From Laetmonice hystrix (taxonomy: Eukaryota), in NCBI GenBank assembly GCA_965235115.1, contig OZ249442.1, positions 27,466,001 through 27,530,000 on the forward strand: a stretch of DNA of 64,000 nucleotides, read 5' to 3'. This document shows, piece by piece, positions 11,616 to 55,151 of this stretch. The stretch's first letter is position 1, and each line of letters starts with the position of its first letter. The notes under the pieces were generated by a model. The model did no database searches. It had not been told where the DNA came from and worked only from the letters and a program-made list of their open reading frames with translations. The translations under genes and the position numbers were made by a program.

Positions 11616-12115
11616 CCGTGACGTCACGACCATTCCTCATGTGATCACGCTGAACCAATCGTCAGCAAGCTAGAGACTCAAGTTACGCTTTCTCCAGTAT
11701 ACATATTTTACGCAATATCTCCACGTGGACAAGTGAACAAATTGACAAAAGTTTATTGCTTAAATTGTTTAAATATTCTTATAGAAAAAAAAACCAATGT
11801 ATGTGTAGGTGCTAAAAGGGCAACTGAATACTACATTGACGTCCGGAGCATAACACTGGAGAAAAGCACTATTGTATGTAAAACTCGGTATTGTAAATAA
11901 AATGAAAGGTTTTTAAAAGCGAATTCATGTTTCTATTGCATAATTTCTTGTTGAACACGCACAAATAAACTTTATGTACAGCTGCCCACATTCTATCTGT
12001 CTACTAGCTGCCACTTTGGGATATTACCAAAAGTTTTTTTGAGTATCTCTCCAAAAAAAAGTCCCATAGAAAATAGATGATCTTGACATACTTTCAAAAG
12101 CCCGTCTATAAAAAT

Positions 12116-12188
12116 TGACCACGATGGGACTCGAACCCACAATCTTCTGATTCGAAGTCAGACGCCTTATCCATTAGGCCACGCGGCC
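12116..12188 (-). tRNA. tRNA-Arg(UCG)
   Basis: Same sequence as 4210-4282, with T5 terminator. Confidence 0.96.
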
Positions 12189-12538
12189 ACCAATATACAG
12201 CCTTTTCCAAATTTCGTAACACTGAGAGAAAACTCGATTAATACACGTTTAGAGTGCACGGTGAGTGTACATGTCAGTGTGAATTTCCTGTTGACACAAC
12301 CCCATGGGTGATAAGTGTAATTATTCACGATCCATACCATATGGTCCCTCTTTCTGCAAAATCAAAATTTGAAGTGACAGCTAGTAGAAGTCGTGTCAAA
12401 GCGTTCTCTGTGTCTGTATTTGAGGCCTTTGTCGGTATTACTCAAAGAGAGAGCGTCAGAGGCGTCACCGTGGCGGATTGGGCCAGGTCAAAGGAGGAGA
12501 GAGCGGGTGGGGTGAGGCTGTCGTGGGCGGGGTGAGGC

Positions 12539-12542
<4 letters not shown>

Positions 12543-12590
<48 letters not shown>
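12543..12590. repeat. (AG)24 microsatellite
   Basis: Read directly from the sequence; flanked by GGGCGG boxes. Confidence 0.97.
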
Positions 12591-12596
<6 letters not shown>

Positions 12597-13771
12597 AGTG
12601 GGCGGGGTGAGACTGTTGTGGTCGGGCCCCAGCTCAAAGAGAGGGCGGGTGACAGGTAACCGTGGCCGGCTCAAATGGTCAACAGACAGGGTCATTCGGC
12701 CCACCTCGGGACTGTCCGGGCGGCACAAGTCAGTAGGCTGCCGAATAGTCCGGTGAAAGGACTTCCGTTTTCGTAACGCTATGGTGTGGGAGTGATACGG
12801 TCGTGGGGATTCTATATTTATATTCTTACCCGTGACGTCACGGCAGTTCACTGACTTGAGCCGTCCAGACCACAACTAGCGAAGCGACCGGAAGTTGGGC
12901 CGAGGTTTTCCGAATGCAGACAAGGTGTGACCGTGGTTGGTGGTGACCGGCTCGAAAGGGAAACGGGAAAGGTGTGACCTAGTTAGACTAGTCAACCCCT
13001 AGTCATTTCTCTGCCGACTAGGGTTCGACGGTTTTAACATTTTAAACAAAGATGACCGAGTAGTGGAAAGTGGGCACGACTCTTTCAGACTAACTTTCCA
13101 AAAACTGTTTGTAATAGCGGGGCACTATTCGGACTTAGTTATTTGTTTAAAAGGTGAAACTGTCTAAAATAAAGTCTACCCTGACAAAGATGAAAAACAA
13201 AAAGAAGAAAACCGTCCGTCCACGTGTTTAACTACTCTAAGTTTTACAGTGGTTGGTGGCGGTTGGTTCAAAGGGGGAGAGGGCGAGGTGTGACCGTTAC
13301 GGGAAGGCAGGCGGGTCACTCCTCGCCGGGACTGCCCTATTCACACCTATAGCTCCCGGCCTAGGGTGGCGGCTATGATCTCGACTCGTGAAATTCCTCT
13401 AAGGCCGCATTTTTTCACACATCCACTTACAAAGGACATGTCAAAGCCTTTGAAGGGGCAGCCTCCACCGAGTGGGATGCTATATAAGTCAGTTCCCTGG
13501 ACACAGAAATCAGAACCTTGTCGACCGTCACAGACGTCGGACATCATATCACGGATTGCATTGGACTGCTGTAAACACGGGACATACGACCAGTTTGGAA
13601 GCTTCACTAGGTATGATTCAGCTTATAATCAGCACTGCAGGGAGCGGCAAGATCTGTTTAGGTTACTACAACAATATAAAGTTATCCTTGAGCATACAGT
13701 TTTTAATTGCTCTTATATTTTTTGACAATGCCATTTCTGTTTCAGACTCGAATTCAGGGGCTACCTTCACC

Positions 13772-16700
13772 ATGAGGCTACAGGCCATTCTCCTCCTGCT
13801 GATTACCGCCTGGCTACCGTCGACCTCAACCCTGGAGGGAGGTCTCTCCATCGAGCTGACCTCTTCACTCCAGGCGGACAGTCCGGCCCACCAATCGACT
13901 GGAGAGGGAACAGTCGGTCTAGAGATGATCGCCTCCTGTCGGGCCTCCTGTGGCGTCACGGTCAGCATTCTCCGTTCATTGTACCAATAATTTTATGATG
14001 AAAATTATGAAAACAATTTACAACAACTGTGTTTTAGATTAGAGCATTCCGTTAACAACAACCCGGATTTGACCTAATGTCTATAAATCTGGGGTTTCTT
14101 CTAGTTTCTTCAGTGGCCGCTAGGTGACCGGCAGTGCCTGGAGGAACCTCAATGTGTAACGGTCAGTATAAATTATATGCGTCACGATTTTGGCCACGAT
14201 TCAGATACAGGCCGTAACAGCTATATTTTAGGGCTTTACGCTTTTTTATCCGTTCTCCAAACCATTTATTCACTTTCTCTATCCCTTTCAGTGTTGGCGA
14301 TTATGCGACCTTCTGTACACGGCAGAGCTCAAATGGAGAATGTCTTGTGACCAGGACGATTGTGTAAGTCAAATTATATTTTATAACGTATAAAACGACA
14401 GCGTGTAAATTGACCTGGAATAGGTATTCTGACTTGTACTTAAGATATGATTCATATTCAACATATTTTCATTCAGCTCGACGGATGTCAGACTGCCTGC
14501 AGTTTTGATTTCTCGCAGAGTCCCGGTAAGCACACCTCTGTCTTTCAGTGTAGGTCCTTAGGTATGCCATTTCGTTTATAGCTTTTCTGTTATGTAATTT
14601 CCAGATTAATAGTTATTTGATTATTTCCCTGGTTGTAGTCTCTCCCAGTGTTGGCGACTGGCAGTTCCTTGTCGACCCCATACTGACCATTGTGGACGCC
14701 AACAAGTTACACGTCACGTGGTCTCCACCCGAATACCGCCCCCACCAGTCCCGATTCCGATCACCAGGTGGCAGGCCTATCGTTTACACTCTGCTGTTCA
14801 AGGATATCACGAACCCCCACTGGCGAAGGGTCACTTCGGTTAGTATGCAATGGCGTTTGTTAATCCAGATCGAAACTGTATCGGCGAAATTTTATATATA
14901 GGTTATTCTTGATTATCTTTCTAGAATCTAGGATGACCTTTTTTTATTTGCTGATTTCTACTTTTAGACCATGAACTTGAGAGCGATCGTGGAAGGACCA
15001 CACGCAAGCCTTCCAGGCCTTCGGTTCCAGCTGCTCGCATCCTCAGAAGAAGGAACAGTTGCATATGTCTTCATTGGCTACAATCCTACCACCACACTAC
15101 TACCACTGGACCACACTACCTATACCTCTGCTACATTTAAGACATCTACAGAAACCCCGACCTCAACAGTGAGTTGTGAAGCATTCGATCACAATTTGGG
15201 TGTAAAATTGATGGCCTTATGTCATAGCTCATGAGCCAAGCAGACTATATTGTTGGGGTGCTTTACAATAGATATTTCTCCATCCTACAGGGCCACACTG
15301 CAGCGATGACGTCACCAAAGGTATCAGTTGCCGTCACCGAGGATGGAAGCATTGAAGCCACCATAACGTGGGACCAGATTCTCACAGACACTGATCGAAT
15401 TATTTACAATGTCACTTGGGGGCGCCACTCGTGTAATGTCGATCCGAGCCTAACTGCGTGCCCTCTACGGGAAGGTAGACTCTCCGCCAACATCAAGGCT
15501 AAAGATCGCCAGGTAGCTCTTCCAGTTGCTGCTTCCTATATTACATACCTTCAAATCTAATTTTCCGTTCCGATTTCCATTCCGTTAGCCAGAAGGAGTT
15601 CTAAATGGTGCAATGTGTGATGTATGTCGTGTCCTATAGAATATGTAGGCTTACCGCTACCACATTTGTATATTTCAGGAGATGCGCATCGTCCTGACTC
15701 AGCTCACCTTCAATTCCAAGTACTGGCTTCAGGTGAACTTAAGAGGGCAGGTCTACAGTTCGGTCTTCTTCACTCCAGCCTGCCGCCAGGTGGACGCAAC
15801 CTTCATGAGATGTGCCAGACCGGTGGAAACTCTGCCAGCCAGGGTGAAGACCACTACCTTATGGGCAACGCCTTCTAGTGGGACTTTAACATCTCTAATC
15901 ACGACACCCATGTCAACGACCGATTCCGATCGTAGACCGAGTCTGTCTACAGAAAGGAAAGAACTTCCCAAGGACATCAGGCCAAAACTTCACCAAGGAG
16001 GTACGTCAAGGGCATGTACATAACTTCAACTGAAAATTGTCATTGCTTGGATAGGGCACTTGTAGTAAAGTCGGCCACAATGTCACAGTGTGTTAATTTC
16101 ATTATGTTACAGGAGATAAATCCTGGTTGTCTGCTAACTGGCTGGTCCTACTGGTAGCGACGGCTGCCAGTCTGACGACCATGGTTATCTTCACAGCCGG
16201 CCTCTATCTCTGCGGACGTTTAACTCGACCCAAGGGTAAGTGACCGTTCAGTTTATATTCTCAACAGATTATATTATGTGCGAGAAGGAGTGAAACATGA
16301 GAAATATTTCTTAAATGAACCATTTCCCTCTTATTAAAGTATTTGTCGTCTTTCCTCCACAGGATACTCGAGTGCTGGTCAGGCTAACATGACTTTCGCC
16401 AGCCTTCCGCCGTCATACAGTTCCCAAGCCAACCTTCATCAACTCCAGCACCTCCAGTTGTCTCAACGACTCCTGGCCTACACCCCTGTACCACCCGCCT
16501 ACGTCAGCTGCCCTGGCCAAGCCTCCAGGCCCATGGTCATCGCCCCGCCCTACCACGGTCTGCCGTCATTGACTTGTCACCTTCAGGACATGGAGGATGA
16601 CGTACAGCCCCAGCTTTCCTCCTGCCCAGTCTCCCCCAAGGTACCAGTGCCTCATCAGCCCATCCCACAGATCTCCATAGACCTGTGCTCCGACGAATCT

Positions 16701-16916
16701 GACGATGAGTTTCATCTGACACGAACCAGCACCCCGACAGCCACCGTCCTGCGGGTGACAGACAACCCCCTCTACCGACTTGAGCACAGTGCCCTCACAG
16801 TGCCACACCCGAGTCCAGTCCTCACGAGGAGCAGGTCGACTCAGGGCCTAGACCAGTGCTTCATCCGTGACGACAGTGTGTTCAGTCATGAGCGTTCCCA
16901 CCACAGCGACCTCTAG
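13772..16916 (+). CDS. Gene A copy 2, intact ~662-aa type I membrane protein (signal peptide, anosmin-like Cys box, two FN3-like domains, TM, PPxY/NPxY tail)
   Basis: Exons 13772-13960, 14105-14161, 14292-14363, 14477-14525, 14639-14838, 14968-15168, 15291-15512, 15679-16000, 16113-16235 and 16363-16916 join in frame at GT/AG with compatible phases. A second phase-1 donor 36 nt downstream of 14525 is possible. The family call rests on Cys spacing and the FN3 W/Y pattern only. Confidence 0.83.
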
Positions 16917-18250
16917 CGTGTACCACAACGGTCTGCCGCTACAGATTGGGGCGCTAGTGGGGGTAGGGGTGCGCTGCCACATGAGCGAAAACGTGCAATA
17001 TGGTGCATGCCTGGTATTTTATGATGTCAAATGTCAAAAATAAAATATTCAATTCGATTGTGTGTTCAGCCATTCTATGCTTAATTGATAGAACTTCAAA
17101 AGGTCTCTACCTTCTATGCGCCTTTTTATATTTCTTCTCTGCTCCCATGTCCTCAATAGTCGAATATCTAGGATTCATATCTCAAAATGTCAGGCCTGTA
17201 ATAAAAATTGACCCCGTTAAAACTCTATCCCACAATCTTCTCATCTGAAGCCAGACGCCGTATTCATGAGGCCACGTATAGTCTCAATCACTTCTATCGA
17301 CGCCTATACGTTAGGCCTATTAAAATAATAGGCCTGTTATCCCCAACCCGTTTCGTACTGTCGCCCACAGATCCCGTAGCATTTGAACGTCATTGGAGTT
17401 AGGAAGCTGATGTCTTGTCGTACACGTCACTGTTGTCCATATTTGTAATGATTTATTCGCTGTTTCTTTTCTTTCAAGACATCACGTGTTTGAAATAGAA
17501 TCATTAACAGTGCCGCGGCCGTCATTGTTGGCTTTACATTGCGATACACAAAACTGTTTACCTCTACAAAGAGTCTTATATTTTGAAACTGTCTCTCATT
17601 ATTCATTCAAGGTGGTAGCGTTCCCTCAACAACTATGGAGTTATACATGATGGAGAACGTGTTAAATTAAAAGTGTAGAATAGGATTGTACTTCCTAAAT
17701 AGGACCAGACCAAAAGCAGTGCTTTGAATATAAGGCACCGCATGAGACCAAAGTTTTCACACCTTTCCACAAACGTTAACTACCTGCTGTTGTCTGTTCT
17801 TATGGCAACACCTGGGATACATAATGTACATAAGGTCATAGGTCCACAGTAGCTCTTCAGCACTTGAATTGCACCTCAGACTGCCGAACAAGCTTCATAA
17901 TCCAATATAGTTGGAAGAGGAACTCCGATTACATTCACAGAAAAGGTAAGACCCATTCTCACGTTTATGCCTATGTAGAGAAGAGAAATATATATATTCG
18001 TCAGGGGGAGAATAACTAACAGCTCTATCCTAAGAGCCTGTGCTCTGATAAAAAGGTTAAAGGAATTGAAAATTTAAGATGATGACATGTAAGCTTGGCC
18101 GAGAATCATATTTAGGGGCCGTATCAAATCTTAAGTATGTTTGGTCATATATACAGCATTAGGAGAAAAGGGAAACGTTATTCGATATGTAACATTGCAT
18201 TTATTTCCATTTCCAGAACGTTATCCCACTGGACAAGGTTATTAGACAAC

Positions 18251-19087
18251 ATGAATACCCTTAGAGTTTTTACACTCGTCATTATCGTCGCTTTCTTTGG
18301 TGAGTCGGTGAACTTTTTAATATATGTGATTATCGTATCTCAGTATCACTCTTTCAAATATTTCGGGGAAAGTTCTTAAGTTTGTATGCGTATCTGCTCA
18401 ATTTCGCCTGTTTTGACACCTGAACAGCTTATTACTTTTACATTACGTTTTAGATTTTTCCAGATATTCAATGCCCGATGTCCTCTTCAAAAATATGGTT
18501 TAATTGTTTAAAAATACCCCATTTCTGATGTCCTGAATATCCTTTAATAGGTCAAGGTGAAAATGCCACCACATCCGGCCCAACAACGGCAGTGGTTTCC
18601 AGCACAGATCCATTGACAATGGTCACAGATTCGTCCTCTGTGACAAACGACACAGTAACGGCGATTACTGGAACGGTTGAGGCCACCACCACGGCGGAAG
18701 GAAACGCAACAGACGCCACAACAGAGGTCAGTATCATTTCTTACACATTATGATAAAATAGAGGGGAAAATATTCCCATGGAAACTTCCATGGATATACT
18801 CGTATTTCTTCCTGCCTTTAGGTGGCAAAGGTTAACTTTAGAAGTTTAAGTGCAATTTATGTCAGTCCATTTTACATGCAATCATACGAAAGATAATTCA
18901 TTTGTAAAGATTTATCCAGAAAAACACATATTTTCGGTCACGACTGCTTGTTTAAAGATTATTTTCCATTCCTTTGCATTACTGACAGACACCGCGTTCG
19001 TCTCAGAACAGCGCCCACGTTCTTTCCAGCTCTGTGGTCATGGCCATATCGGCCATTGCCACATACAGCGCCCTCTTACGAATTTAA
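18251..19087 (+). CDS. Gene B copy 3 (107-aa putative GPI-anchored micro-mucin), intact
   Basis: Same three-exon structure as copy 1, splice sites intact, few substitutions. Confidence 0.83.
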
Positions 19088-19586
19088 CCGTAACGTCACG
19101 ACCATTCCTCATGTGATCGCGCTGAACCAATCGTCAGCAAGCTAGAGACTCAAGTTACGCTTTCTCCAGTATACATATTTTACGCAATATCTCCACGTGG
19201 ACAAGTGAACAAATTGACAAAAGTTTGGTGCTTAAATTGTTTAAATATTCTTATAGAAAAAAAACCAATGTATGTGTAGGTGCTAAAAGGGCAACTGAAT
19301 ACTACATTGACGTCCGGAGCATAACACTGGAGAAAAGCACTATTGTATGTAAAACTCGGTATTGTAAATAAAATGAAAGGTTTTTAAAAGCGAATTCATG
19401 TTTCTATTGCATAATTTCTTGTTGAACACGCACAAATAAACTTTATGTACAGCTGCCCACATTCTATCTGTCTACTAGCTGCCACTTTGGGATATTACCA
19501 AAAGTTTTTTTGAGTATCTCTCCAAAAAAAAGTCCCATAGAAAATAGATGATCTTGACATACTTTCAAAAGCCCGTCTATAAAAAT

Positions 19587-19659
19587 TGACCACGATGGGA
19601 CTCGAACCCACAATCTTCTGATTCGAAGTCAGACGCCTTATCCATTAGGCCACGCGGCC
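19587..19659 (-). tRNA. tRNA-Arg(UCG)
   Basis: Same cloverleaf sequence with terminator. Confidence 0.96.
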
Positions 19660-20013
19660 ACCAATATACAGCCTTTTCCAAATTTCGTAACACTGAGAGA
19701 AAACTCGAATAATACACGTTTAGAGTGCACGGTGAGTGTACATGTCAGTGTGAATTTCCTGTTGACACAACCCCATGGGTGATAAGTGTAATTATTCACG
19801 ATCCATACCATATGGTCCCTCTTTCTGCAAAATCAAAATTTGAAGTGACAGCTAGTAGAAGTCGGGTCAAAGCGTTCTCTGTGTCTGTATTTGAGGCCTT
19901 TGTCGGTATTACTCAAAGAGAGAGCGTCAGAGGCGTCACCGTGGCGGATTGGGCCAGGTCAAAGGAGGAGAGAGCGGGTGGGGTCAGGCTGTCGTGGGCG
20001 GGGTGAGGCTCCA

Positions 20014-20016
<3 letters not shown>

Positions 20017-20062
<46 letters not shown>

Positions 20063-20102
20063 GGGAGTGGGCGGGGTGAGACTGTTGTGGGCGGGGTGAG
20101 GC

Positions 20103-20136
<34 letters not shown>
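20017..20136. repeat. Duplicated GA-microsatellite/GC-box module (about (GA)21 and (AG)15)
   Basis: GGGGTGAGGCTCCAA-(GA)n-GGGAGTGGGCGGGGTGAGACTGTTGTGGGC occurs twice in this unit only. Confidence 0.93.
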
Positions 20137-20142
<6 letters not shown>

Positions 20143-21317
20143 AGTGGGCGGGGTGAGACTGTTGTGGGCGGGCCCCAGCTCAAAGAGAGGGCGGGTGACA
20201 GGTAACCGTGGCCGGCTCAAATGGTCAACAGACAGGGTCAGTCGGCCCACCTCGGGACTGTCCGGGCGGCACAAGTCAGTAGGCTGCCGAATAGTCCGGT
20301 GAAAGGACTTCCGTTTTCGTAACGCTATGGTGTGGGAGTAATACGGTCGTGGGGGATTCTATATTTATATTCTTACCCGTGACGTCACGGCAGTTCACTG
20401 ACTTGAGCCGTCCGGACCACAACTAGCGAAGCGACCGGAAGTTGGGCCGAGGTTTTCCGAATGCAGACAAGGTGTGACCGTGGTTGGTGGTGACCGGCTC
20501 GAAAGGGAAACGGGAAAGGTGTGACCTAGTTAGACTAGTCAACCCCTAGTCAGTTCTCTGCCGACTAGGGTTCGACGGTTTTAACATTTTAAATAAAGAT
20601 GACCGAATAGTGGAAAGTGTGCACGACTCTTTCAGGCTAACTTTCCAAAAACTGTTTGTTATAGCGGGCTACTATTCGGACATAGTTAATTGTTTAAAAG
20701 GTGAAACTGCTTCAAAAAAACTCTACCCTGACGAAGCTGAAAAACAAAAAGAAGAACCCGCCCGTCCACGGGTTTAACTACTCTAAGTTTTACAGTGGTT
20801 GGTGGCGGTTGGCTCAAAGGGGCAGAGGGCGAGGTGTGACCGTTACGGGAAGGTAGGCGGGTCACTCCTCGCCGGGACTGCCCTATTCACACCTATAGCT
20901 CCCGGCCTAGGGTGGCGGCTATGATCTCGACTCGTGAAATTCCTCTAAGGCCGCATTTTTTCACACATCCACTTACAAAGAACATGTCAAAGCCTTTGAA
21001 GGGGCAGCCTCCACCGAGTGGGATGCTATATAAGTCAGTTCCCTGGACACAGAAATCAGAACCTTGTCGACCGTCACAGACGTCGGACATCATATCACGG
21101 ATTGCATTGGACTGCTGTAAACACGGGACATACGACCAGTTTGGAAGCTTCACTAGGTATGATTCAGCTGATAATCAGCACTGCAGGGAGCGTCAAGATC
21201 TGTTTAGGTTACGACAACAATATAAAGTTATCATTGACCATACAGTTTTTGATTGCTCTTATATTTTTTGACAATGCCATTTCTGTTTCAGACTCGAATT
21301 CAGGGGCTACCTTCACC

Positions 21318-24300
21318 ATGAGGCTACAGGCCGTTCTCCTCCTGCTGATTACCGTCTGGCTACCGTCGACCTCAACCCTGGAGGGAGGTCTCTCCATCGA
21401 GCTGACCTCTTCACTCCAGGCGGACAGTCCGGCCCACCAATCGACTGGAGAGGGAACAGTCGATCTAGAGATGATCGCCTCCTGTCGGGCCTCCTGTGGC
21501 GTCACGGTAAGCATTCTCCATTCATTGTACCAGTAATTTTATGATGAAAATTATGAAAACAATTTACAACAACTGTGTTTTAGATTAGAGCATTCCGTTA
21601 ACAACAACCCGGATTTCACCTCATGTCTATAAATCTGGGGTTTTTTCTAGTTTCTTCAGTGCCGCTAGGTGACGGGCAGTGCCTGGAGGAACCTCAATGT
21701 GTAACGGTCAGTATAAATTATATGCGTCACGATTTTGGCCACGATTCAGATACAGGTCGTAACAGCTATTTTTAGGGGTTTAAGCTTTTTTATCCGTTCT
21801 CCAAGCCATTCATTCACTGTCTCTATCCCTTTCAGTGTTGGCGATTATGCGACCTTCTGTACACGGAAGAGCTCAAATGGAGAATGTCTTGTGACCAGGA
21901 CGATTGTGTAAGTCAAATTATATTTTATAACGTAAAAAACGACAGCGTGTAAATTGACCTGGAATAGGTATTCTGACTTGTACTTAAGATATTATTCATA
22001 TTCAACATTTTCATTCAGCTCGACGGATGTCAGACTGCCTGCAGTTTTGATTTCTCGCAGAGTCCCGGTAAGCACACCTCTGTCTTTCAGTGTAGGTCCT
22101 TAGGTATGCTAGTTTTTCTGTTATGTAATTTCCAGATTAATAGTTATTTGATTATTTCCCTGGTTGTAGTCTCTCCCAGTGTTGGCGACTGGCAGTTCCT
22201 TGTCGACCCCATACTGACCATTGTGGACGCCAACAAGTTACACGTCACGTGGTCTCCACCCGAATACCGCCCCCACCAGTCCCTGATTCCGATCACCAGG
22301 TGGCAGGCCTATCGTTTACACTCTGCTGTTCAAGGATATCACGAACCCCCACTGGCGCAGGGTCACTTCGGTTAGTATGCAATGGCGTTTGTTAATCCAG
22401 ATCGAAACTGTATCGGCGAAATTTTATATATAGGTTATTCTTGATTATCTTTCTAGAATCTAAGATGACCTTTTTTTATTTGCTGATTTCTACTTTTAGA
22501 CCATGAACTTGAGAGCGATCGTGGAAGGACCACACGCAAGCCTTCCAGGCCTTCGGTTCCAGCTGCTCACATCCTCAGAAGAAGGAACAGTTGCATATGT
22601 CTTCATTGGCTACAATCCTACTACCACACTACTACCACTGGACCACACTACCTATACCTCTGCTACATTCAAGACATCTACAGAAACCCCGGCCTCAACA
22701 GTGAGTTGTGAAGCATTCGATCCCAATTTGTACGATCACAATTTGGGTGTAAAATTAATAGCCTTGTGTCATAGCTCATGAGCCAAGCAGACTATATTGT
22801 TGGGGTGCTTTACAATAGATATTTCTCCATCCTACAGGGCCACACTGCAGCGATGACGTCACCAAAGGTATCAGTTGCCGTCACCGAGGATGGAAGCATT
22901 GAAGCCACCATAACGTGGGACCAGATTCTCACAGACACTGATCGAATTGTTTACAATGTCACTTGGGGGTGCCACTTGTGTAATGTCGATCCGAGCCTAA
23001 CTGCGTGCCCTCTACGGGAAGGTAGACTCTCCGCCAACATCAAGGCTAAAGATCGCCAGGTAGCTCTTCCAGTTGCTGCTTCCTATATTACATACCTTCA
23101 AATCTAATTTTCCGTTCCGATTTCCATTCCGTTAGCCAGAAGGAGTTCTAAATGTTGCAATGTATGATGTATGTCGTGTCCTATAGAATATGTAGGCTTA
23201 CCGCTACCACATTTGTATATTTCAGGAGATGCGCGTCGTCCTGACTCAGCTCACCTTCAATTCCAAGTACTGGCTTCAGGTGAACTTAAGAGGGCAGGTC
23301 TACAGTTCGGTCTTCTTCACTCCAGCCTGCCGCCAGGTGGACGCAACCTTCATGAGATGTGCCGGACCGGTGGAAACTCTGCCACCCAGGGTGAAGACCA
23401 CTACCTTATGGGCAACGCCTTCTAGCGGGACTTTAACATCTCTAATCACGACACCCATGTCAACGACCGATTCCGATCGTAGACCGAGTCTGTCTACAGA
23501 AAGGAAAGAACTTCCCAAGGACATCAGGCCAAAACTTCACCAAGGAGGTACGTCAAGGGCATGTACATAACTTCAACTGAAAATTGTCATTGCTTGGATA
23601 GGGCACTTGTAGTAAAGTCGGCCACAATGTCACAGTGTGTTAATTTCATTATGTTACAGGAGATAAATCCTGGTTGTCTGCTAACTGGCTGGTCCTACTG
23701 GTAGCGACGGCTGCCAGTCTGACGACCATGGTTATCTTCACAGCCGGCCTCTATCTCTGCGGACATTTAACTCGACCCAAGGGTAAGTGACCGTTCAGTT
23801 TATATTCTCAACAGATTCTATTATGTGCGAGAAGGAGTGAAACATGAGAAATATTTCTGAAATGAACCTTTTCCCTCTTATTAAAGTATTTGTCGTCTTT
23901 CCTCCACAGGATACTCGAGTGCTGGTCAGGCTAACATGACTTTCGCCAGCCTTCCGCCGTCATACAGTTCCCAAGCCAACCTTCACCAACTCCAGCACCT
24001 CCAGTTGTCTCAACGACTCCTGGCCTACACCCCTGTACCACCCGCCTACGTCAGCGGCCCTGGCCACGCCCCCAGGCCCATGGTCATCGCCCCGCCCTAC
24101 CACGGTCTGCCGCCATTGACTTGTCATCTTCAGGACATGGAGAATGACGTACAGCCCCGGCTTTCCTCCTGCCCAGACTCCCCCAAGGTACCAGTGCCTC
24201 ATCAGCCCATCCCACAGATCTCCATAGACCTGTGCTCCGACGAATCTGACGATGAGTTTCATCTGACACGAACCAGCACCCCGACAGCCACCGTCCTGCG

Positions 24301-24463
24301 GGTGACAGACAACCCCCTCTACCGACTTGAGCACAGTGCCCTCACAGTGCCACACCCGAGTCCAGTCCTCACGAGGAGCAGGTCGACTCAGGGCCTAGAC
24401 CAGTGCTTCATCCGTGACGACAGTGTGTCCAGTCATGAGCGTTCCCACCACAGCGACCTCTAG
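21318..24463 (+). pseudogene. Gene A copy 3, disabled
   Basis: 1-bp deletion at ~21661 (CAG TGC CGC TAG) gives an early stop in the Cys box, and the +T frameshift is present at 22284. The 3' exons are open. Confidence 0.78.
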
Positions 24464-25791
24464 CGTGTACCACAACGGTCTGCCGCTACAGATTGGGGCG
24501 CTAGTGGGGGTAGGGGTGCGCTGCCAGATGAGCGAAAACGTGCAATTGGTGCTATTTTATGATGCCAAATGTCAAAAATAAAATATTCAATTCGATTGTG
24601 TGTTCTGCCATTCTACGCTTAATTGATAGAACTTCAAAAGGTCTCTACCTTCTATGCGCCTTTTTATATTTCTTCTCTGCTCCCATGTCCTCAATAGTCG
24701 AATATCTAGGATTCACATCTCAAAATGCCAGGCCTGTAATAAAAATTGACCCCGTTAAAACTCTATCCTGCAATCTTCTCATCTGAAGCCAGACGACGTG
24801 TTCATGAGGCCACGTATAGTCTCAATCACTTCTATCGACGCCTATGCGTTAGGCCTATTAAAATAATAGGCCTGTTATCCCCAACCCGTTCCGTACTCTC
24901 GCCCACAGATCCCGTAGCATTTGAACGTCATTGGAGTTAGGAAGCTGATGTCTTGTCGTACACGTCACTGTTGTCCATATTTGTAATGAATTATTCGCTG
25001 TTTCTTTTCTTTCAAGACATCACGTGTTTGAAATAGAATCATTAACAGTGCCGCGGCCGTCATTGTTGGCTTTACATTGCGATACACATAACTGTTTACC
25101 TCTACAAAGAGTCTTATATTTTGAAACTGTCTCTCATTATTTCTTCTTCAAGGTGGTAGCGTTCCCTCAACAACTATGGAGTTATACATGATGGAGAACG
25201 TGTTAAATTAAAAGTGTAGAATCGGATTGTACTTCCTAAATAGGACCAGACCAAAAGCAGTGCTTTGAATATAAGGCACCGCATGAGACCAAAGTTTTCA
25301 CACCTTTTCACAAACGTTAACTACCTGCTGTTGTCTGTTCTTATGGCAACACCTGGGATAAATAATGTACATAAGGTCATAGGTCCACAGTAGCTCTTCA
25401 GCACTTGAATTGCACCTCAGACTGCCGAACAAGCTTCATAATCCAATATAGTTGGAAGAGGAACTCCGATTACATTCACAGAAAAGGTAAGACCCATTCT
25501 CACGTTTATGCCTATGTAGAGAAGAGAAATATATATATTCGTCAGGGGGAGAATAACTAACAGCTCTATCCTAAGAGCCTGTGCTCTGATAAAAAGGTTA
25601 AAGGAATTGGAAATTTAAGATAATGACATGTAAGCTTGGCCGAGAATCATATTTAGGGGCCGTATCAAATCTCAAGTATGTTTGGTCATATATACAGCAT
25701 TAGGAGAGAAGGGGAACGTTATTCGATATGTAACATTGCATTTATCTCCATTTCCAGAACGTTATCCCACTGGACAAGGTTATTAGACAAC

Positions 25792-26628
25792 ATGAATACC
25801 CTTAGAGTTTTCACACTCGTCATTATCGTTGCCTTCTTTGGTGAGTCGGTGAACTTTTTAATATATGTGATTATTGTATCTCAGTATCACTCTTTCAAAT
25901 ATTTCGGGGAAAGTTCTTAAGTTTGTATGCGTATCTGCTCAATTTCGCCTGTTTTGACACCTGAACAGCTTATTACTTTTACATTACGTTTTAGATTTTT
26001 CCAGATATTCAATGCCCGATGTCCTCTTCAAAGATATGGTTTAATTGTTTAAAAATACCCCATTTCTGATGTCCTGAATATCCTTTAATAGGTCAAGGTG
26101 AAAATGCCACCACATCCGGCCCAACAACGGCAGTGGTTTCCAGCACAGATCCATTGACAATGGTCACAGATTCGTCCTCTGTGACAAACGACACAGTAAC
26201 GGCGATTACTGGAACGGTTGAGGCCACCACCACGGCGGAAGGAAACGCAACAGACGCCACAACAGAGGTCAGTATGATTTCTTACACATTATGATAAAAT
26301 AGAGGGGAAAATATTCCCATGGAAACTTCCATGGATATACTCGTATTTCTTCCTGCCTTTAGGTGGCAAAGGTTATCTTTAGAAGTTTAAGTGCAATTTA
26401 TGTCAGTCCATTTTACACGCAATCATACGAAAGATAATTCATTTGTAAAGATTTATCGAGAAAAACACATATTTTCGGTCACGACTGCTTGTTTAAAGAT
26501 TATTTTCCATTCCTTTGCATTACTGACAGACACCGGATTCGTCTCAGAACAGCGCCCACGTTCTTTCCAGCTCTGTGGTCATGGCCACATCGGCCATTGC
26601 CACATACAGCGCCCTCTTACGAATTTAA
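25792..26628 (+). CDS. Gene B copy 4, intact
   Basis: Matches copy 1 at offset 22,917. Confidence 0.84.
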
Positions 26629-27126
26629 CCGTGACGTCACGACCATTCCTCATGTGATCGCGCTGAACCAATCGTCAGCAAGCTAGAGACTCAAGTTACG
26701 CTTTCTCCAGTATACATATTTTACGCAATATCTCCACGTGGTCAAGTGAACAAATTGATAAAAGTTTGGTGCTTAAATTGTTTAAATATTCTTATAGAAA
26801 AAAAACCAATGTATGTGTAGGTGCTAAAAGGGCAACTGAATACTACATTGACGTCCGGAGCATAACACTGGAGAAAAGCACTATTGTATGTAAAACTCGG
26901 TATTGTAAATAAAATGAAAGGTTTTTAAAAGCGAATTCATGTTTCTATTGCATAATTTCTTGTTGAACACGCACAAATAAACTTTATGTACAGCTGCCCA
27001 CATTCTATCTGTCTACTAGCTGCCACTTTGGGATATTACCAAAAGTTTTTTGAGTATCTCTCCAAAAAAAAGTCCCATAGAAAATAGATGATCTTGACAT
27101 ACTTTCAAAAGCCCGTCTATAAAAAT

Positions 27127-27199
27127 TGACCACGATGGGACTCGAACCCACAATCTTCTGATTCGAAGTCAGACGCCTTATCCATTAGGCCACGCGGCC
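27127..27199 (-). tRNA. tRNA-Arg(UCG)
   Basis: Same cloverleaf sequence with terminator. Confidence 0.96.
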
Positions 27200-28625
27200 A
27201 CCCATATACAGCTTTTTCCAAATTTGGTAACACTGAGAGAAAACTCGACTAATACACGTTTAGAGTGCACGGTGAGTGTACATGTCAGTGTGAATTTCCT
27301 GTTGACACAACCCCATGGGTGATAAGTGTAATTATTCACGATCCATACCATATGGTCCCTCTTTCTGCAAAATCAAAATTTGAAGTGACAGCTAGTAGAA
27401 GTCGGGTCAAAGCGTTCTCTGTGTCTCTCCCTAGAGAGGGAGGGAGGGAGGGAGGGAGTGGGCGGGGTGAGACTGTTGTGGGCGGGCCCCAGCTCAAAGA
27501 GAGGGCGGGTGACAGGTAACCGTGGCCGGCTCAAATGGTCAACAGACAGGGTCATTCGGCCCACCTCGGGACTGTCCGGGCGGCACAAGTCAGTAGGCTG
27601 CCGAATAGTCTGGTGAAAGGACTTCCGTTTTCGTAACGCTATGGTGTAGGAGTGATACGGTCGTGGGGGATTCTATATTTATATTCTTACCCGTGACGTC
27701 ACGGCAGTTCACTCACTTGAGCCGTCCAGACCACAACTAGCGAAGCGACCGGAAGTTGGGCCGAGGTTTTCCGAATGCAGACAAGGTGTGACCGTAGTTG
27801 GTGGTGACCGGCTCGAAAGGGAAACGGGAAAGGTGTGACCTAGTTAGACTAGTCAACCCCTAGTCAGTTCTCTGCCGACTAGGGTTCGACGGGTTTAACA
27901 TTTTAAATAAAGATGACCGAATAGTGGAAAGTGTGCACGACTCTTTCAGGCTAACTTTCCAAAAACTGTTTGTTATAGCGGGCTACTATTCGGACATAGT
28001 TAATTGTTTAAAAGGTGAAACTGTTAAAAAAAAAACTCTACCCTGACGAAGCTGAAAAACAAAAAGAAGAAACCGCCCGTCCACGGGTTTAACGGTTTTA
28101 CAGTGGTTGGTGGCGGTTGGCTCAAAGGGGCAGAGTGCGAGGTGTGACCGTTACGGGAAGGCAGGCGGGTCACTCCTCGCCGGGACTGCCCTATTCACAC
28201 CTATAGCTCCCGGCCTAGGGTGGCGGCTATGATCTCGACTCGTGAAATTCCTCTAAGGCCGCATTTTTTCACACATCCACTTACAAAGAACATGTCAAAG
28301 CCTTTGAAGGGGCAGCCTCCACCGAGTGGGATGCTATATAAGTCAGTTCCCTGGACACAGAAATCAGAACCTTGTCGACCGTCACAGACGTCGGACATCA
28401 TATCACGGATTGCATTGGACTGCTGTTAACACGGGACATACGACCAGTTTGGAAGCTTCACTAGGTATGATTCAGCTTATAATCAGCACTGCAGGGAGCG
28501 TCAAGATCTGTTTAGGTTACGACAACAATATAAAGTTATCCTTGACCATACAGTTTTTCATTGCTCTTATATTTTTAGACAATGCTATTTCTGTTTCAGA
28601 CTCGAATTCAGGGGCTACCTTCACC

Positions 28626-31600
28626 ATGAGGCTACAGGCCGTTCTCCTCCTGCTGATTACCGCCTGGCTACCGTCGACCTCAACCCTGGAGGGAGGTCTC
28701 TCCATCGAGCTGACCTCTTCACTCCAGGCGGACAGTCCGGCCCACCAATCGACTGGAGAGGGAACAGTCGGTCTAGAGATGATCGCCTCCTGTCGGGCCT
28801 CCTGTGGCGTCACAGTAAGCATTCTCCATTCATTGTACCAATAATTTTATTATGAAAATTAGGAAAACAATTTACAACAACTGTGTTTTAGATTAGAGCA
28901 TTCCGTTAACAACAACCCGAATTTCACCTCAAAGACTATAAATCTGTTTTTTTTTTCTAGTTTCTTCTGTGGCCGCTAGGTGACGGGCAGTGCCTGAAGG
29001 AACCTCAATGTGTAACGGTCAGTATAAATTATATGCGTCACGATTTTGGCCACGATTCAGATACAGGCCGTAACAGCTATTTTTAGGGGTTTAAGCTTTT
29101 TTTATCCGTTCTCCAAGCCATTCATTCACTGTCTCTATCCCTTTCAGTGTTGGCGATTATGCGACCTTCTGTACACGGAAGAGCTCAAATGGAGAATGTC
29201 TTGTGACCAGGACGATTGTGTAAGTCATATTATATTTTATAACGTAAAAAACGACAGCGTGTAAATTGACCTGGAATAGGTATTCTGACTTGTACTTAAG
29301 AAATGATTCATATTCAACATATTTTCATTCAGCTCGACGGATGTCAGACTGCCTGCAGTTTTGATTTCTCGCAGAGTCCCGATAAGCACACCTCTGTCTT
29401 TCAGTGTAGATCCTTAGGTATGCCATTTCGATTATAGTTTTTCTGTTAAGTAATTTCCGGATAAATAGTTATTTGATTATTTCCCTGGTTGTAACCTCTC
29501 CCAGTGTTGGCGACTGGCAGTTCCTTGTCGACCCCATACTGACCATTGTGGACGCCAACAAGTTACACGTCACGTTGTCTCCACCCGAATACCGCCCCGA
29601 CCAGTCCCTGATTCCGATCACCAGGTGGCAGGCCTATCGTTTACACTCTGCTGTTCAAGGATATCACGAACCCCCACTGGCGAAGGGTCACTTCGGTTAG
29701 TATGCAATGGCGTTTGTTAATCCAAATCGAAACTGTGTCGGCGAAATTTTATATAAAAGTTATTCTTGATTATCTTTTTAGAATCTAGGATGACATTTTG
29801 TATTTGCTGATTTCTACTTTTAGACTAAGAACTTGAGAGCGATCGTGGAGGGACCACACGCAAGTCTTCCAGGCCTTCGGTTCCAGCTGCTCGCATCCTC
29901 AGAAGAAGGAACAGTTGCATATGTCTTCATTGGCTACAATCCTACCACCACACTACTACCACTGGGCCACACTACCTATACCTCTGCTACATTCAAGACA
30001 TCTACAGAAACCCCGGCCTCAACAGTGAAGCATTCGATCACAATTTGGGTGTAAAATTGATGGCCTTATGTCATAGCTCATGAGCCAAGCAGACTATATT
30101 GTTGGGGTGCTTTACAATAGATATTTCTCCATCCTACAGGGCCACACTGCAGCGATGACGTCACCAAAGGTATCAGTTGCCGTCACCGAGGATGGAAGCA
30201 TTGAAGCCACCATAACGTGGGACCAGATTCTCACAGACACTGATCGAATTGTTTACAATGTCACTTGGGGGCGCCACTCGTGTAATGTCGATCCGAGCCT
30301 AACTGCGTGCCCTCTACGGGAAGGTAGACTCTCCGCCAACATCAAGGCTAAAGATCGCCAGGTAGCTCTTCCAGTTGCTACTTCCTCTACTACATACCTT
30401 CAAATCTAATTTTCCGTTCCGATTTCCATTCCGTTAGCCAGAATGTTGCAACGTATGATGTATGTCGTGTCCTATAGAATATGTAGGCTTACCGCTACCA
30501 CATTTGTATATTTCAGGAGATGCGCGTCGTCCTGACTCAGCTCACCTTCAATTCCAAGTACTGGCTTCAGGTGAACTTAAGAGGGCAGGTCTACAGTTCG
30601 GTCTTCTTCACTCCAGCCTGCCGCCAGGTGGACGCAACCTTCATGAGATGTGCCGGACCGGTGGAAACTCTGCCACCCAGGGTGAAGACTACTACCTTAT
30701 GGGCAACGCCTTCTAGCGGGACTTTAACATCTCTACTCACGACACCCATGTCAACGACCGATTCCGATCGTAGACCGAGTCTGTCTACAGAAAGGAAAGA
30801 ACTTCCCAAGGACATCAGGCCAAAACTTCACCAAGGGGGTACGTCAAGGGCATGTACATAACTTCAACTGAAAATTGTCATTGCTTGGATAGGGCACTTG
30901 TAGTAAAGTCGGTCACAATGTCACAGTGTGTTAATTTCATTATGTTACAGGAGATAAATCCTGGTTGTCTGCTAACTGGCTGGTCCTACTGGTAGCGACG
31001 GCTGCCAGTCTGACGACCATGGTTATCTTCACAGCCGGCCTCTATCTCTGCGGACGTTTAACTCGACTCAAGGGTAAGTGACCATTCACTTTAGGCTGGT
31101 CAGGCTAACATGACTTTCGCCAGCCTTCCGCCGTCATACAGTTCCCAAGCCAACCTTCACCAACTCCAGCACCTCCAGTTGTCTCAACGACTCCTGGCCT
31201 ACACCCCTGTACCACCCGCCTACGTCAGCTGCCCTGGCCACGCCCCCAGGCCCATGGTCATCGCCCCGCCCTACCACGGTCTGCCGTCATTGACTTGTCA
31301 CCTTCAGGACATGGAGGATGACGTACAGCCCCGGCTTTCCTCCTGCCCAGACTCCCCCAAGGTACCAGTGCCTCATCAACCCATCCCACAGATCTCCATA
31401 GACTTGTGCTCCGACGAATCTGACGATGAGTTTCATCTGACACGAACCAGCACCCCGACAGCCACCGTCCTGCGGGTGACAGACAACCCCCTCTACCGAC
31501 TTGAGCACAGTGCCCTCACAGTGCCACACCCGAGTCCAGTCCTCACGAGGAGTAGGTCGACCCAGGGCCTAGACCAGTGCTTCATCCGTGACGACAGTGT

Positions 31601-31637
31601 CTCCAGTCATGAGCGTTTCCACCACAGCGACCTCTAG
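28626..31637 (+). pseudogene. Gene A copy 4, disabled (same lesions as copy 1)
   Basis: CCCG-ATAAGC donor loss, GTAA acceptor loss, +T at 29609, and loss of the tail-exon acceptor near 31089. Confidence 0.8.
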
Positions 31638-32942
31638 CGTGTCGCGTGCCTGTAACGGTCTGCCGCTACAGATTGGGGAGCTAGTGGGGGGGGGGGGGTG
31701 CGCTGCCACATGAGCGAAATTGTGTAATATGGTGCATGCCTGGTATTTTATGATGTCAAATGTCAAAATTAAAATATTCAATTCGATTGTGTGTTCTGCC
31801 ATTCTACGCTTAACTGATAGAACTTCAAAAGGTCTCGACCTTCTATGCGCCTTTTTATATTTCTTCTCTGCTCCCATGTCCTCAATAGTCGAATATCTAG
31901 GATTCACATCTCAAAATGCCAGGCCTGTAATAAGAATTGACCCCGTTGAAACTCTATCCCACAATCTTCTTATCCGAAGTCAGACGCCGTATTCATGAGG
32001 CCCCGTATAGTCCGTTATCCCCGTTATCCCCAACCCGTTTCGTACTGTCGCCCACAGATCCCGTAGCATTTGAACGTCATTGGAGTTAGGAAGCTGATGT
32101 CTTGTCGTACACGTCACTGTTGTCCATATTTGTAATGATTTATTTACTGTTTCTTTTGTTTCAAGACATCACGTGTTTGAAATAGAATCATTAACAGTGC
32201 CGCGGCCGTCATTGTTGGCTTTACATTGCGATACACAAAACTGTTTACCTCTACAAAGAGTCTTATATTTTGAAACTGTCTCTCATTATTTCTTCTTCAA
32301 GGTGGTAGCGTTCCCTCAACAACTATGGAGTTATACATGATGGAGAACGTGTTAAATAAAAAGTTTAGAATCGGATTGTACTTCCTAAATAGGACCATTC
32401 CAAAAGCAGAGCTTTGAATATAAGGCACCGCATGAGACCAAAGTTTTCACACCTTTCCACAGACGTTAACTACCTGCTGTTGTAGGCCTGCTGTTGTCTG
32501 TTCTTATGGCAACACCTGGGATACATAATGTACATAAGGTCATAGGTCCACAGTAACTGCTCAGCACTTGAATTGCACCTCAGACTGCCGAACAAGCTTC
32601 ATAATCCAATATAGTTGGAAGAGGAACTCCGATTACATTCACAGAAAAGGTAAGACCCATTCTCACGTTTATGCCTATGTAGAGAAGAGAAATATATATA
32701 TTATTCAGGGGGAGAATAACTAACAGCTCTATCCTAAGAGCTTGTGCTCTATGGATAAAAAGGTTAAAGGAATTGAAAATGTATGCTTGGCCGAGAATCA
32801 TATTTAGGGCCCGTATCAAATCTTAAGTATGTTTGGTCATATAAACAGAATTAGGAGAGAAGGGGAACGTTATTCGATATGTAACATTGTATTTATCTCC
32901 ATTTCCAGAACGTTATCCCACTGGACAAGGTTATTAGACAAC

Positions 32943-32997
32943 ATGAATACATGTACCCTTAGAGTTTTCACACTCGTCATTATCGTTGCCTTCTTTG
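32943..32997 (+). pseudogene. Gene B copy 5: signal-peptide exon only, with a 6-bp in-frame footprint; exons 2-3 deleted
   Basis: Encodes MNTCTLRVFTLVIIVAFF, then G|gtgagt. Deletion junction at 33092/33093. Confidence 0.85.
32948..32955. mobile_element. Transposon excision footprint TACATGTA
   Basis: At exactly the TA that holds the MITE in the sister copy. Reads TA + CA (element left end) + TG (element right end) + TA. Confidence 0.85.
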
Positions 32998-33949
32998 GTG
33001 AGTCGGTGAACATTTTAATATGTGATTATCGTATCTTAGTATCACTCTCTCAAATATTACGGGGAAAGTTCTTAAGTTTGTATGCGTATCTGAATGCAGA
33101 CAAGGTGTGACCGTGGTTGGTGGTGACCGGCTCGAAAGGGAAACGGGAAAGGTGTGACCTAGTTAGACTAGTCAACCCCTAGTCATTTCTCTGCCGACTA
33201 GGGTTCGACGGTTTTAACATTTTAAACAAAGATGACCGAGTAGTGGAAAGTGGGCACGACTCTTTCAGACTAACTTTCCAAAAACTGTTTGTTATAGCGG
33301 GCTACTATTCGGACATAGTTAATTGTTTAAAAGGTGAAACTGCTTAAAAAAACTCTACCCTGACGAAGCTGAAAAACAAAAAGAAGAAACCGCCCGTCCA
33401 CGGGTTTAACTACTCTAAGTTTTACAGTGGTTGGTGGCGGTTGGCTCAAAGGGGCAGAGGGCGAGGTGTGACCGTTACGGGAAGGCAGCCGGGTCACTCC
33501 TCGCCGGGACTGCCCTATTCACACCTATAGCTCCCGGCCTAGGGTGGCGGCTATGATCTCGACTCGTGAAATTCCTCTAAGGCCGCATTTTTTCACACAT
33601 CCACTTACAAAGAACATGTCAAAGCCTTTGAAGGGGCAGCCTCCACCGAGTGGGATGCTATATAAGTCAGTTCCCTGGACACAGAAATCAGAACCTTGTC
33701 GACCGTCACAGACGTCGGACATCATATCACGGATTGCATTGGACTGCTGTAAACACGGGACATACGACCAGTTTGGAAGCTTCACTAGGTATGATTCAGC
33801 TTATAATCAGCACTGCAGGGAGCGTCAAGATCTGTTTAGGTTACGACAACAATATAAAGTTATCCTTGACCATACAGTTTTTGATTGCTCTTATATTTTT
33901 TGACAATGCCATTTCTGTTTCAGACTCGAATTCAGGGGCTACCTTCACC

Positions 33950-36900
33950 ATGAGGCTACAGGCCGTTCTCCTCCTGCTGATTACCGCCTGGCTACCGTCG
34001 ACCTCAACCCTGAAGGGAGGTCTCTCCATCGAACTGACCTCTTCACTCCAGGCGGACAGTCCGGCCCACCAATCGACTGGAGAGGGAACAGTCGGTCTAG
34101 AGATGATCGCCTCCTGTCGGGCCTCCTGTGGCGTCACGGTAAGCATTCTCCATTCATTGTACCAGTAATTTTATGATGAAAATTATGAAAACAATTTACA
34201 ACAACTGTGTTTTAGATTAGAGCATTCCGTTAACAACAACCCGGATTTCACCTCATGTCTGTAAATCTGGGTTTTTTTTCTAGTTTCTTCAGTGGCCGCT
34301 AGGTGACGGGCAGTGCCTGGAGGAACCTCAATGTGTAACGGTCAGTATAAATTATATGCGTCACGATTTTGGCCACGATTCAGATACAGGTCGTAACAGC
34401 TATTTTTAGGGGTTTAAGCTTTTTTTATCCGTTCTCCAAGCCATTCATTCACTGTCTCTATCCCTTTCAGTGTTGGCGATTATGCGACCTCCTGTACACG
34501 GAAGAGCTCAAATGGAGAATGTCTTGTGACCAGGACGATTGTGTAAGTCAAATTATATTTTATAACGTAAAAAACGACAGCGTGTAAATTGACCTGGAAT
34601 AGGTATTCTGACTAGTACTTAAGATATGATTCATATTCAACATATTTTCATTCAGCTCGACGGATGTCAGACTGCCTGCAGTTTTGATTTCTCGCAGAGT
34701 CCCGGTAAGCACACCTCTGTCTTTCAGTGTAGGTCCTTAGGTATGCTATTTCGATTATAGTTTTTCTGTTATGTAATTTCCAGATTAATAGTTATTTGAT
34801 TATTTCCCTGGTTGTAGTCTCTCCCAGTGTTGGCGACTGGCAGTTCCTTGTCGACCCCATACTGACCATTGTGGACGCCAACAAGTTACACGTCACGTGG
34901 TCTCCACCCGAATACCGCCCCCACCAGTCCCGATTCCGATCACCAGGTGGCAGGCCTATCGTTTACACTCTGCTGTTCAAGGATATCACGAACCCCCACT
35001 GGCGAAGGGTCACTTCGGTTAGTATGCAATGGCGTTTGTTAATCCAAATCGAAACTGTGTCGGCAAAATATAGGTTATTCTTGATTATCTTTTTAGAATC
35101 TAGGATGACCTTTTTTTATTTGCTGATTTCTACTTTTAGACCATGAACTTGAGAGCGATCGTGGAAGGACCACACGCAAGTCTTCCAGGCCTTCGGTTCC
35201 AGCTGCTCGCATCCTCAGAAGAAGGAACAGTTGCATATGTCTTCATTGGCTACAATCCTACCACCACACTACTACCACTGGACCACACTACCTATACCTC
35301 TGCTACATTCAAGACATCTACAGAAACCCCGGCCTCAACAGTGAGTTGTGAAGCTTTCGGCCCCAATTTGGGTGTAAAATTGATGGCCTTATGTCATAGC
35401 TCATGAGCCAAGCAGACTATATTGTTGGGGTGCTTTACAATAGATATTTCTCCATCCTACAGGGCCACACTGCAGCAATGACGTCACCAAAGGTATCAGT
35501 TGCCGTCACCGAGGATGGAAGCATTGAAGCCACCATAACGTGGGACCAGATTCTCACAGACACTGATCGAATTGTTTACAATGTCACTTGGGGGCGCCAC
35601 TCGTGTAATGTCGATCCGAGCCTAACTGCGTGCCCTCTACGGGAAGGTAGACTCTCCGCCAACATCAAGGCTAAAGATCGCCAGGTAGCTCTTCGAGTTG
35701 CTGCTTCCTATATTACATACCTTCAAATCTAATTTTGCGTTCCGATTTCCATTCCGTTAGCCAGAAGGAGTTCTAAATGTTGCAATGTATGATGTATGTC
35801 GTGTCCTATAGAATATGTAGGCTTACCGCTACCACATTTGTATATTTCAGGAGATGCGCGTCGTCCTGACTCAGCTTACCTTTAATTCCAAGTACTGGCT
35901 TCAGGTGAACTTAAGAGGGCAGGTCTACAGTTCGGTCTTCTTCACTCCAGCCTGCCGCCAGGTGGACGCAACCTTCATGAGATGTGCCGGGCCGGTGAAA
36001 ACTCTGCCAGCCAGGGTGAAGACCACTACCTTATGGGCAACGCCTTCTAGCAGGAGTTTAACATCTCTACTCACGACACCCATGTCAACGACCGATTCCG
36101 ATCGTAGACCGAGTCTGTCTACAGGAGGGAAAGAACTTCCCAAGGACATCAGGCCAAAACTTCATCAAGGGGGTACGTCAAGGGCATGTACATAACTTCA
36201 ACTAAACATTGTCATTGGTTGGATAGGGCATTTGTAGTAAAGTCGGCCACAATGTCACAGTTTGTTAATTTCATTATGTTACAGGAGATAAATCCTGGTT
36301 GTCTGCTAACTGGCTGGTCCTACTGGTAGCGACGGCTGCCAGTCTGACGACCATGGTTATCTTCACAGCCGGCCTCTATCTCTGCGGATGTTTAACTCGA
36401 CCCAAGGGTAAGTGACCATTCAGTTTATATTCTCAACAGATTCTATTATGTGCGAGAAGGAGTGAAACATGAGAAATATTTCTGAAATGAACCATTTCCC
36501 TCTTATCAAAGTAGTTGTCGTCTTTCTTCCACAGGGTACTCCAGTGCAGGCCAGGCTAACATGACTTTCGCCAGCTTTCCGCCGTCATACAGTTCCCAAG
36601 CCAACCTGTACCAACTCCAGCACCTCCAGTTGTCTCAACGACTCCTGGCCTACACCCCTGTACCACCCGCCTACGTCAGCTGCCCTGGCCACGCCCCCAG
36701 CCCCATGGTCATCGCCCCGTCCTACCACGGTCTGCCGTCATTGACTTGTCACCTTCAGGACATGGAGGATGACGTACAGCCCCGGCTTTCCTCCTGCCCA
36801 GACTCCCCCAAGGTACCAGTGCCTCATCAACCCATCCCACAGATCTCCATAGACCTGTGCTCCGACGAATCTGACGATGAGTTTCATCTGACACGAACCA

Positions 36901-40183: not shown

Positions 40184-40225
<42 letters not shown>
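40184..40225. repeat. (AG)21 microsatellite
   Basis: Read directly from the sequence. Confidence 0.96.

Positions 40226-47635: not shown

Positions 47636-47687
<52 letters not shown>
47636..47687. repeat. (AG)26 microsatellite
   Basis: Read directly from the sequence. Confidence 0.96.

Positions 47688-55099: not shown

Positions 55100-55151
<52 letters not shown>
55100..55151. repeat. (AG)26 microsatellite
   Basis: Read directly from the sequence. Confidence 0.96.

Follow-up and report, generated by a model that had tools for sequence, protein, structure and literature searches.

A probable excision scar of a pogo-type transposon derivative in a tandem gene array of Laetmonice hystrix

Introduction

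When one unit of a tandem array carries a transposable element at a TA dinucleotide and its closest relative carries only a few extra letters at the same TA, was the element once present in both and later cut out of one? This question is raised by a 64,000-nucleotide stretch of the Laetmonice hystrix genome (hereafter the window; C7:27466001-27530000 of a 627-Mb assembly in 35 contigs), which was compared together with 50 kb of flanking sequence. The window is occupied by a tandem array with a unit length of approximately 7.5 kb, and the site lies at the start of a small gene in these units, here called gene B. A first-pass annotation had read the site as the footprint of a Tc1-family excision that followed a 22.9-kb duplication.

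Three states of one target site

The 22-bp stretch ending in the gene B start codon is found nine times in the window and three times in those 50 kb of flanks. Ten of these 12 units (seven in the window and three in the flanks) continue as ..ATGAA-TA-CCCTTAG, with a plain TA. Direct reading of unit 2 gives ..ATGAA-TA, then CAGTGGTC...GACCACTG, then TA-CCCTTAG: a 755-bp element on the reverse strand (10032-10786) sits in codon 3 of gene B exon 1, between the left (10030-10031) and right (10787-10788) TA of a target-site duplication. Unit 5, likewise read directly, has ..ATGAA-TA-CATG-TA-CCCTTAG, with TA-CATG-TA at 32948-32955. CATG corresponds to the first two (CA) and last two (TG) letters of the 755-bp element; the six additional base pairs are therefore CA, TG, and a second TA, and they are no tandem copy of adjacent letters.

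A genome-wide pattern search extended this comparison to 20 element-free copies of the site, 19 of which have a plain TA, the sole exception being unit 5. Plain TA is thus the ancestral state, which disposes of the possibility, raised in the first-pass annotation, that TACATGTA is ancestral. The difference between the filled unit 2 and the altered unit 5 is confirmed, as are the two descriptions from which that annotation started, namely a CAGT...ACTG element at a TA in unit 2 and TA-CATG-TA in its duplicate, with plain TA in all other units. Judged by its sequence, the unit 5 site is probably an excision scar: TA, end letters of a TA-flanked TIR element, and TA again, with a filled sister and plain outgroups.

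A young family of deletion derivatives

The 755-bp element has a perfect 14-bp TIR (14/14), CAGTGGTCCCCCTC, and CAGT...ACTG ends. Copies of the TIR core, GTGGTCGC, recur subterminally at element positions 45, 62, 643, 697, and 714. At least 25 full-length family copies are present in the genome, with identities of 96-99.7%, and TA flanks both ends in 23 of 25. No target preference beyond TA was seen in the flanks of 28 family copies. Mean pairwise divergence within the family is 1.0%, and the copy nearest to the unit 2 element differs from it at two of 755 positions. In total, exact TA + TIR matches number 191 in the genome, corresponding to roughly 95 elements of all sizes.

By size (755 bp, below the limit of about 800 bp), lack of coding capacity, TIRs, and target-site duplication, the element has the features of a MITE. 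Its copy number is modest for a MITE family, however, and "deletion derivative" may be the better name. Alignment to a larger transposon at locus L038 accounts for its whole length: element positions 1-167 match L038:2918-3084 at 99.4%, and positions 166-755 match L038:503-1094 at 97.8%. The intervening deletion (L038:1095-2917) removes all but 16 nt of the open reading frame at L038:1079-2638. On this alignment, the 755-bp element is a pogo-superfamily transposon minus one internal stretch; in unit 2, its orientation is opposite to that of the transposase reading frame in the autonomous transposon.

Other internal-deletion derivatives of the same transposon were also encountered (loci L036, L037, L039, and L028-L030), with lengths of 966-988 bp, 1.5 kb, 1.6 kb, and approximately 1.85 kb. 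The L039 derivative retains an open 343-aa frame in which the N-terminal DNA-binding part is fused to the C-terminal tail, without the catalytic core.

An autonomous partner of the pogo superfamily

Exact TIR matches were paired across the genome. TIR pairs at C1:63.48 Mb and C6:16.52 Mb (L036 and L037) were discarded as candidate partners, being non-coding derivatives of 1.5-1.6 kb. The pairing did reveal a 2,582-bp transposon at C1:54229142-54231727 (L038:501-3086, TA included), with the same TIRs, TA flanks, and an open 519-aa frame. A second intact copy on C8 (L040:679-3263) shares 99.77% DNA identity with the C1 copy and likewise has an open 519-aa frame. Both copies read ..TA|CAGTGGTC...GACCACTG|TA.., and their TIRs are short, within the 40-bp limit for this type of transposon. 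A third (C7:12.92 Mb; 86% identity) contains one stop. The search that the first-pass annotation had recommended, for TIR-bearing relatives and an autonomous partner, thus yielded both.

The predicted 519-aa protein contains CENP-B_N, HTH_Tnp_Tc5, and DDE_1 domains (Pfam). The DDE_1 match is full-length (profile 1-177 of 177, E = 9e-48), and CENP-B_N, like HTH_Tnp_Tc5, exceeds the Pfam cut-off. The putative catalytic triad, D175/D281/D311, gives a DD29D spacing. Spacings of DD29-36D and DD29-59D/E delimit Tigger and pogoR, respectively, and the combination of CENP-B_N/HTH_Tnp_Tc5 domains with DD29D follows the Tigger/pogoR pattern (PMC7386202). Judged by domains and spacing, the partner is a member of the pogo superfamily of Tigger/pogoR type. 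Tc1 proper, defined by DDE_3/HTH_Tnp_Tc3 and DD34E, was considered and set aside, since the transposase that shares the TIRs has DDE_1 and DD29D; on the same grounds, the attribution of the excision to the Tc1 family has to be given up.

Named relatives of the transposase are annotated as "tigger transposable element-derived protein 4/6-like" in corals, molluscs, amphioxus, and hemichordates, at 38-50% identity. The best non-self full-length protein match reaches 59% identity, and a 403-aa protein, the source of which is probably the same or a sister species, matches at 95%. No close named relative was found among the protein matches.

Units 2 and 5 lie in sister blocks

Unit 2 lies near the end of a block that begins approximately 7,170 bp upstream of the window (roughly C7:27458830) and occupies window positions 1-10031; its counterpart, with unit 5, occupies positions 15751-32949. 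Compared at an offset of 22,918 bp, the two blocks (-7170 to 10031 and 15751-32949, approximately 17.3 kb) show only eight differences, or approximately 99.95% identity; self-comparison of the window alone (1-10033 versus 22918-32951) gives 99.96%. Six of the eight are substitutions, one is a G-run length difference, and one a GA-repeat length difference. Leftward of 15751, identity to copy 1 falls abruptly to approximately 97%, the level typical between units. The repeat difference corresponds to a length change at 20016 in an (AG)n tract; a long tract of this kind is present once per unit (19965-20189, 12543-12598, 40184-40225, 47636-47687, and 55100-55151).

Units 2 and 5 match perfectly over the 2,023 bp left of the site and the 137 bp right of it; the mismatch counts of all other units are at least some 90 on the left and at least five on the right. 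The 137 bp (10789-10925 in unit 2, equivalent to 32956-33092 in unit 5) carry variants private to these two units and are the final stretch that unit 5 has in common with unit 2. Because these private variants lie to the right of the site, the site is inside the shared block and not at its edge. Of the six substitutions, three are derived solely in copy 2, one is derived solely in copy 1, and the remaining two are ambiguous; patches of gene conversion from other units were therefore rejected as the source of the block differences.

Units 2 and 5 thus stand as sister copies, as proposed from their private variants. The accompanying claim of a 22.9-kb duplication fares less well: the period is indeed 22,918 bp, but the near-identical block covers only 17.3 kb of it. 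A 4.8-kb stretch (10926-15750), approximately 97% similar to its counterpart, bridges the two copies from where copy 1 ends to where copy 2 begins. Because this link is gap-free within the contig, it argues that the tandem arrangement of the two blocks is real.

Gene B and the junction beside the scar

In unit 5, gene B exon 1 (32943-32997, forward strand; GT donor at 32998) runs through the scar and is two codons longer (Thr-Cys), the protein start reading M-N-T-C-T-L-R-V. The first-pass annotation took this as restoration of the gene B frame. Arithmetically, that is correct; however, unit 5 has lost exons 2-3, and no intact gene B results. Moreover, a gain of six is inherent to a scar of the TA-CATG-TA type, and frame restoration is therefore no sign of selection. 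In unit 2, the element breaks gene B in codon 3, with a stop 34 codons in from the ATG. Two of approximately 21 gene B copies are thus disabled, each in a different way: unit 2 by the element and unit 5 by the loss of exons 2-3.

The loss in unit 5 coincides with a non-homologous junction at 33092|33093, where microhomology amounts to 1 bp (G) and unit position +167 abuts +2143; 1,987 bp of unit coordinates, including both exons, are skipped. To its right lies a separate young repeat (33089-59577; period 7,456 bp, 3.5 units, approximately 99.6% identity), and the 99.95% and 99.6% blocks meet exactly at the junction. As the origin of the junction, simple deletion of 1,987 bp from a unit 2 sister was rejected, since rightward of 33092 the identity is only 96.6% to unit 2 but 99.6% to units 6-8. 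Nor could the excision break be linked to the junction, or the junction ascribed to alternative transposition: the scar is intact, and 137 bp separate it from the junction, which does not coincide with an element end. Because the 17.3-kb block breaks off non-homologously at 33092|33093, 137 bp past the scar, the history of the array is more complex than one clean duplication; its blocks and junctions record several exchanges or deletions of recent date, which the phrase "one 22.9-kb duplication" simplifies.

Other irregularities were noted in and around the array. At C7:27453895 (L032/L033), approximately 12,105 bp ahead of the window, one unit is missing the gene B start region that units usually have; its homology to other units starts abruptly in exon 1 (..GTCTAG|TTATCGTTGC..), preceded by unrelated sequence, and the site-anchor spacing around it is 13.3 kb rather than the usual 7.5 kb. 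Unit 9 alone has an insertion of approximately 100 bp with repeated CGGGGGGCTAGCGGG (61243-61272), just downstream of gene B exon 1. A 19-bp tandem repeat occupies 59952-60145 (10 copies, 92% matches).

Insertion, excision, and the order of events

Taken together, these data make it probable that insertion of the element predates the separation of the two blocks and that a pogo-type transposase later removed it from one block. Tc1/mariner-type enzymes are described, with van Luenen 1994 as the source, as making the 3' cut at the element end and the 5' cut 2-3 nt within the element (PMC2170065). Scars of 0-4 bp were recovered in excision assays of the pogo element Passer (PMC9976928), and pogo-driven MITEs with excision scars are known from the Emigrant/Lemi1 system of Arabidopsis (PMC1636448). 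By analogy, the element would have entered the TA in gene B codon 3 in the common ancestor of both blocks, the alternative being two hits on one TA out of thousands. The unit 2 block would have retained it, while in the unit 5 block the family transposase, supplied in trans, would have excised it. Cleavage of the 5' strand 2 nt inside each end would leave each flank as TA with a 2-nt element overhang, and filling and joining of the two overhangs by end-joining would produce TA+CA+TG+TA. Both the 2-nt stagger and the repair by end-joining are deduced from the scar, and transposase activity is presumed from the intact reading frames. The scar matches the textbook mechanism; what is new here is the family member, the mechanism being already known. 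On the block comparison, the excision is very recent, falling within approximately 0.035-0.05% of block divergence, whatever the order of events.

That order is less certain. Duplication followed by excision, as proposed in the first-pass annotation, is the simplest sequence of events and is slightly favored over excision before duplication, although it is not proven, as exchange between homologues fits equally well. What does stand of the proposal is insertion before separation and a later excision, given the filled sister, the scar, and the ancestral plain TA; the placement of the excision after the duplication is not the only parsimonious one. Excision could have taken place first, on one homologue, with the filled and scarred homologues then undergoing an unequal exchange that set both states in tandem, or with the assembly switching haplotype phase within the 7.9-kb stretch over which the blocks do not differ; the two states would in that case be alleles, now or recently. 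Such a history involves the same number of events, the eight block differences could reflect old allelic variation, unequal exchange has recurred in the array, and the blocks are not phased by read data. Nothing counts directly against it, and the gap-free, approximately 97% similar stretch at 10926-15750 indicates at least that the tandem arrangement is built into the contig. We regard this course of events as rather improbable.

Far less credible is the proposal that CATGTA arose as an artefact in assembly or polishing, or as a 6-bp indel by chance, with unit 5 in truth a plain TA and the unit 2 insertion younger than the duplication. The array is admittedly a hard tandem case, and the site is without confirmation by reads. 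The read data consisted of Logan contigs from three runs of one sample in one study, probably those behind the assembly itself. Over 30000-35999, these are 200-900-bp fragments that collapse paralogues, none of which is shown bridging either 32948-32955 or the 33092 junction. No 6-bp deletion or loose end is seen at the scar site in these paralogue-collapsed contigs, which weigh neither for nor against the scar. A contig with variants private to units 2 and 5 (33032-33051) has a word depth of approximately 68, compared with approximately 800 for stretches common to some 21-25 units, which hints at two copies, contig depth being an unreliable measure. The odds that a random insertion of 6 bp reproduces the predicted scar are approximately 1 in 4,096, and it would further need to land at precisely that TA; CATGTA is not copied from its neighbors; and clipped element-bearing reads would add longer runs of element ends, not exactly 2+2 letters. 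Less plausible still is that duplication came first and was followed either by independent insertion at the same TA in both copies or by a hop from unit 5 to unit 2, with later excision from unit 5, for although the element family is young and cut-and-paste elements of the IS630-Tc1-mariner/pogo group often reinsert close by, this scheme requires three transposon events, with one TA out of thousands in the vicinity hit exactly twice, in a family with no preference beyond TA in its flanks.

Implications

With insertion followed by excision from one block as the preferred reading, the filled, scarred, and plain sites within one contig form a clean natural before-and-after pair, which documents a very recent excision of a pogo-derived element in this animal. 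The site speaks for a transposase that is likely functional and implies that this pogo lineage cuts with a 2-nt stagger. The general understanding of excision is left unchanged by it. Whether a pogo-type transposon still jumps in the germ line of this worm is a more tentative matter: the idea merits attention because two intact copies are 99.8% identical, their derivatives are only approximately 1% diverged, and excision falls within 0.035% divergence (six substitutions in 17.3 kb), yet we consider it somewhat doubtful. If true, the worm would offer an animal pogo element that is active in nature today, cuts with a 2-nt stagger, and could, like Passer, serve as a genetic tool.

The element family is also a candidate source for some of the TACATGTA motifs elsewhere in the genome. 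This octamer has 79,253 genome-wide matches, compared with 28,579 for a reversed control octamer; many of the matches lie in satellite arrays with a period of 35-65 bp (for example, C1:193116-193657 and C1:812645-814528), and the excess over the control is therefore no count of scars. Both TAGGCCTA and TACATGTA were noted as candidate scar motifs at other genomic positions.

Comparison with known systems

The scar itself most closely recalls those left by Tc1 and Tc3 in Caenorhabditis elegans (TA-CA-TG-TA), which share with it the TA target, the CAGT...ACTG ends, the 2+2-letter scar, and the doubled TA; the cut lies 2-3 nt inside the 5' strand (PMC2170065). The enzymes differ: the Laetmonice transposase is a predicted pogo-superfamily protein with DDE_1, DD29D, and CENP-B-type DNA-binding domains, whereas Tc1 is DD34E.

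A closer counterpart in overall organization is Emigrant/Lemi1 of Arabidopsis, in which a short non-autonomous element with TIR-related subterminal repeats depends on a pogo-type partner, and empty sites keep extra TIR letters as excision scars (PMC1636448). Unlike Emigrant, the Laetmonice element resides in an animal genome, arose by a one-step internal deletion that leaves it approximately 98-99% identical to its partner, and is present in tens of copies rather than as a large old family.

Passer, an active fish transposon of the pogo superfamily, also targets TA and leaves scars of 0-4 bp, as established experimentally (PMC9976928). Its domain architecture is BrkDBD/HTH_Tnp_Tc5 with DD35D, in contrast to the CENP-B_N/HTH_Tnp_Tc5 and DD29D found here. 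Tigger/pogoR elements and the tigger-derived 4/6-like proteins carry all three Pfam domains found here and align along almost the entire length at 38-50% identity; in contrast to those proteins, the Laetmonice sequence is bounded by TIRs and TA flanks, which marks it as a transposon and not a domesticated gene.
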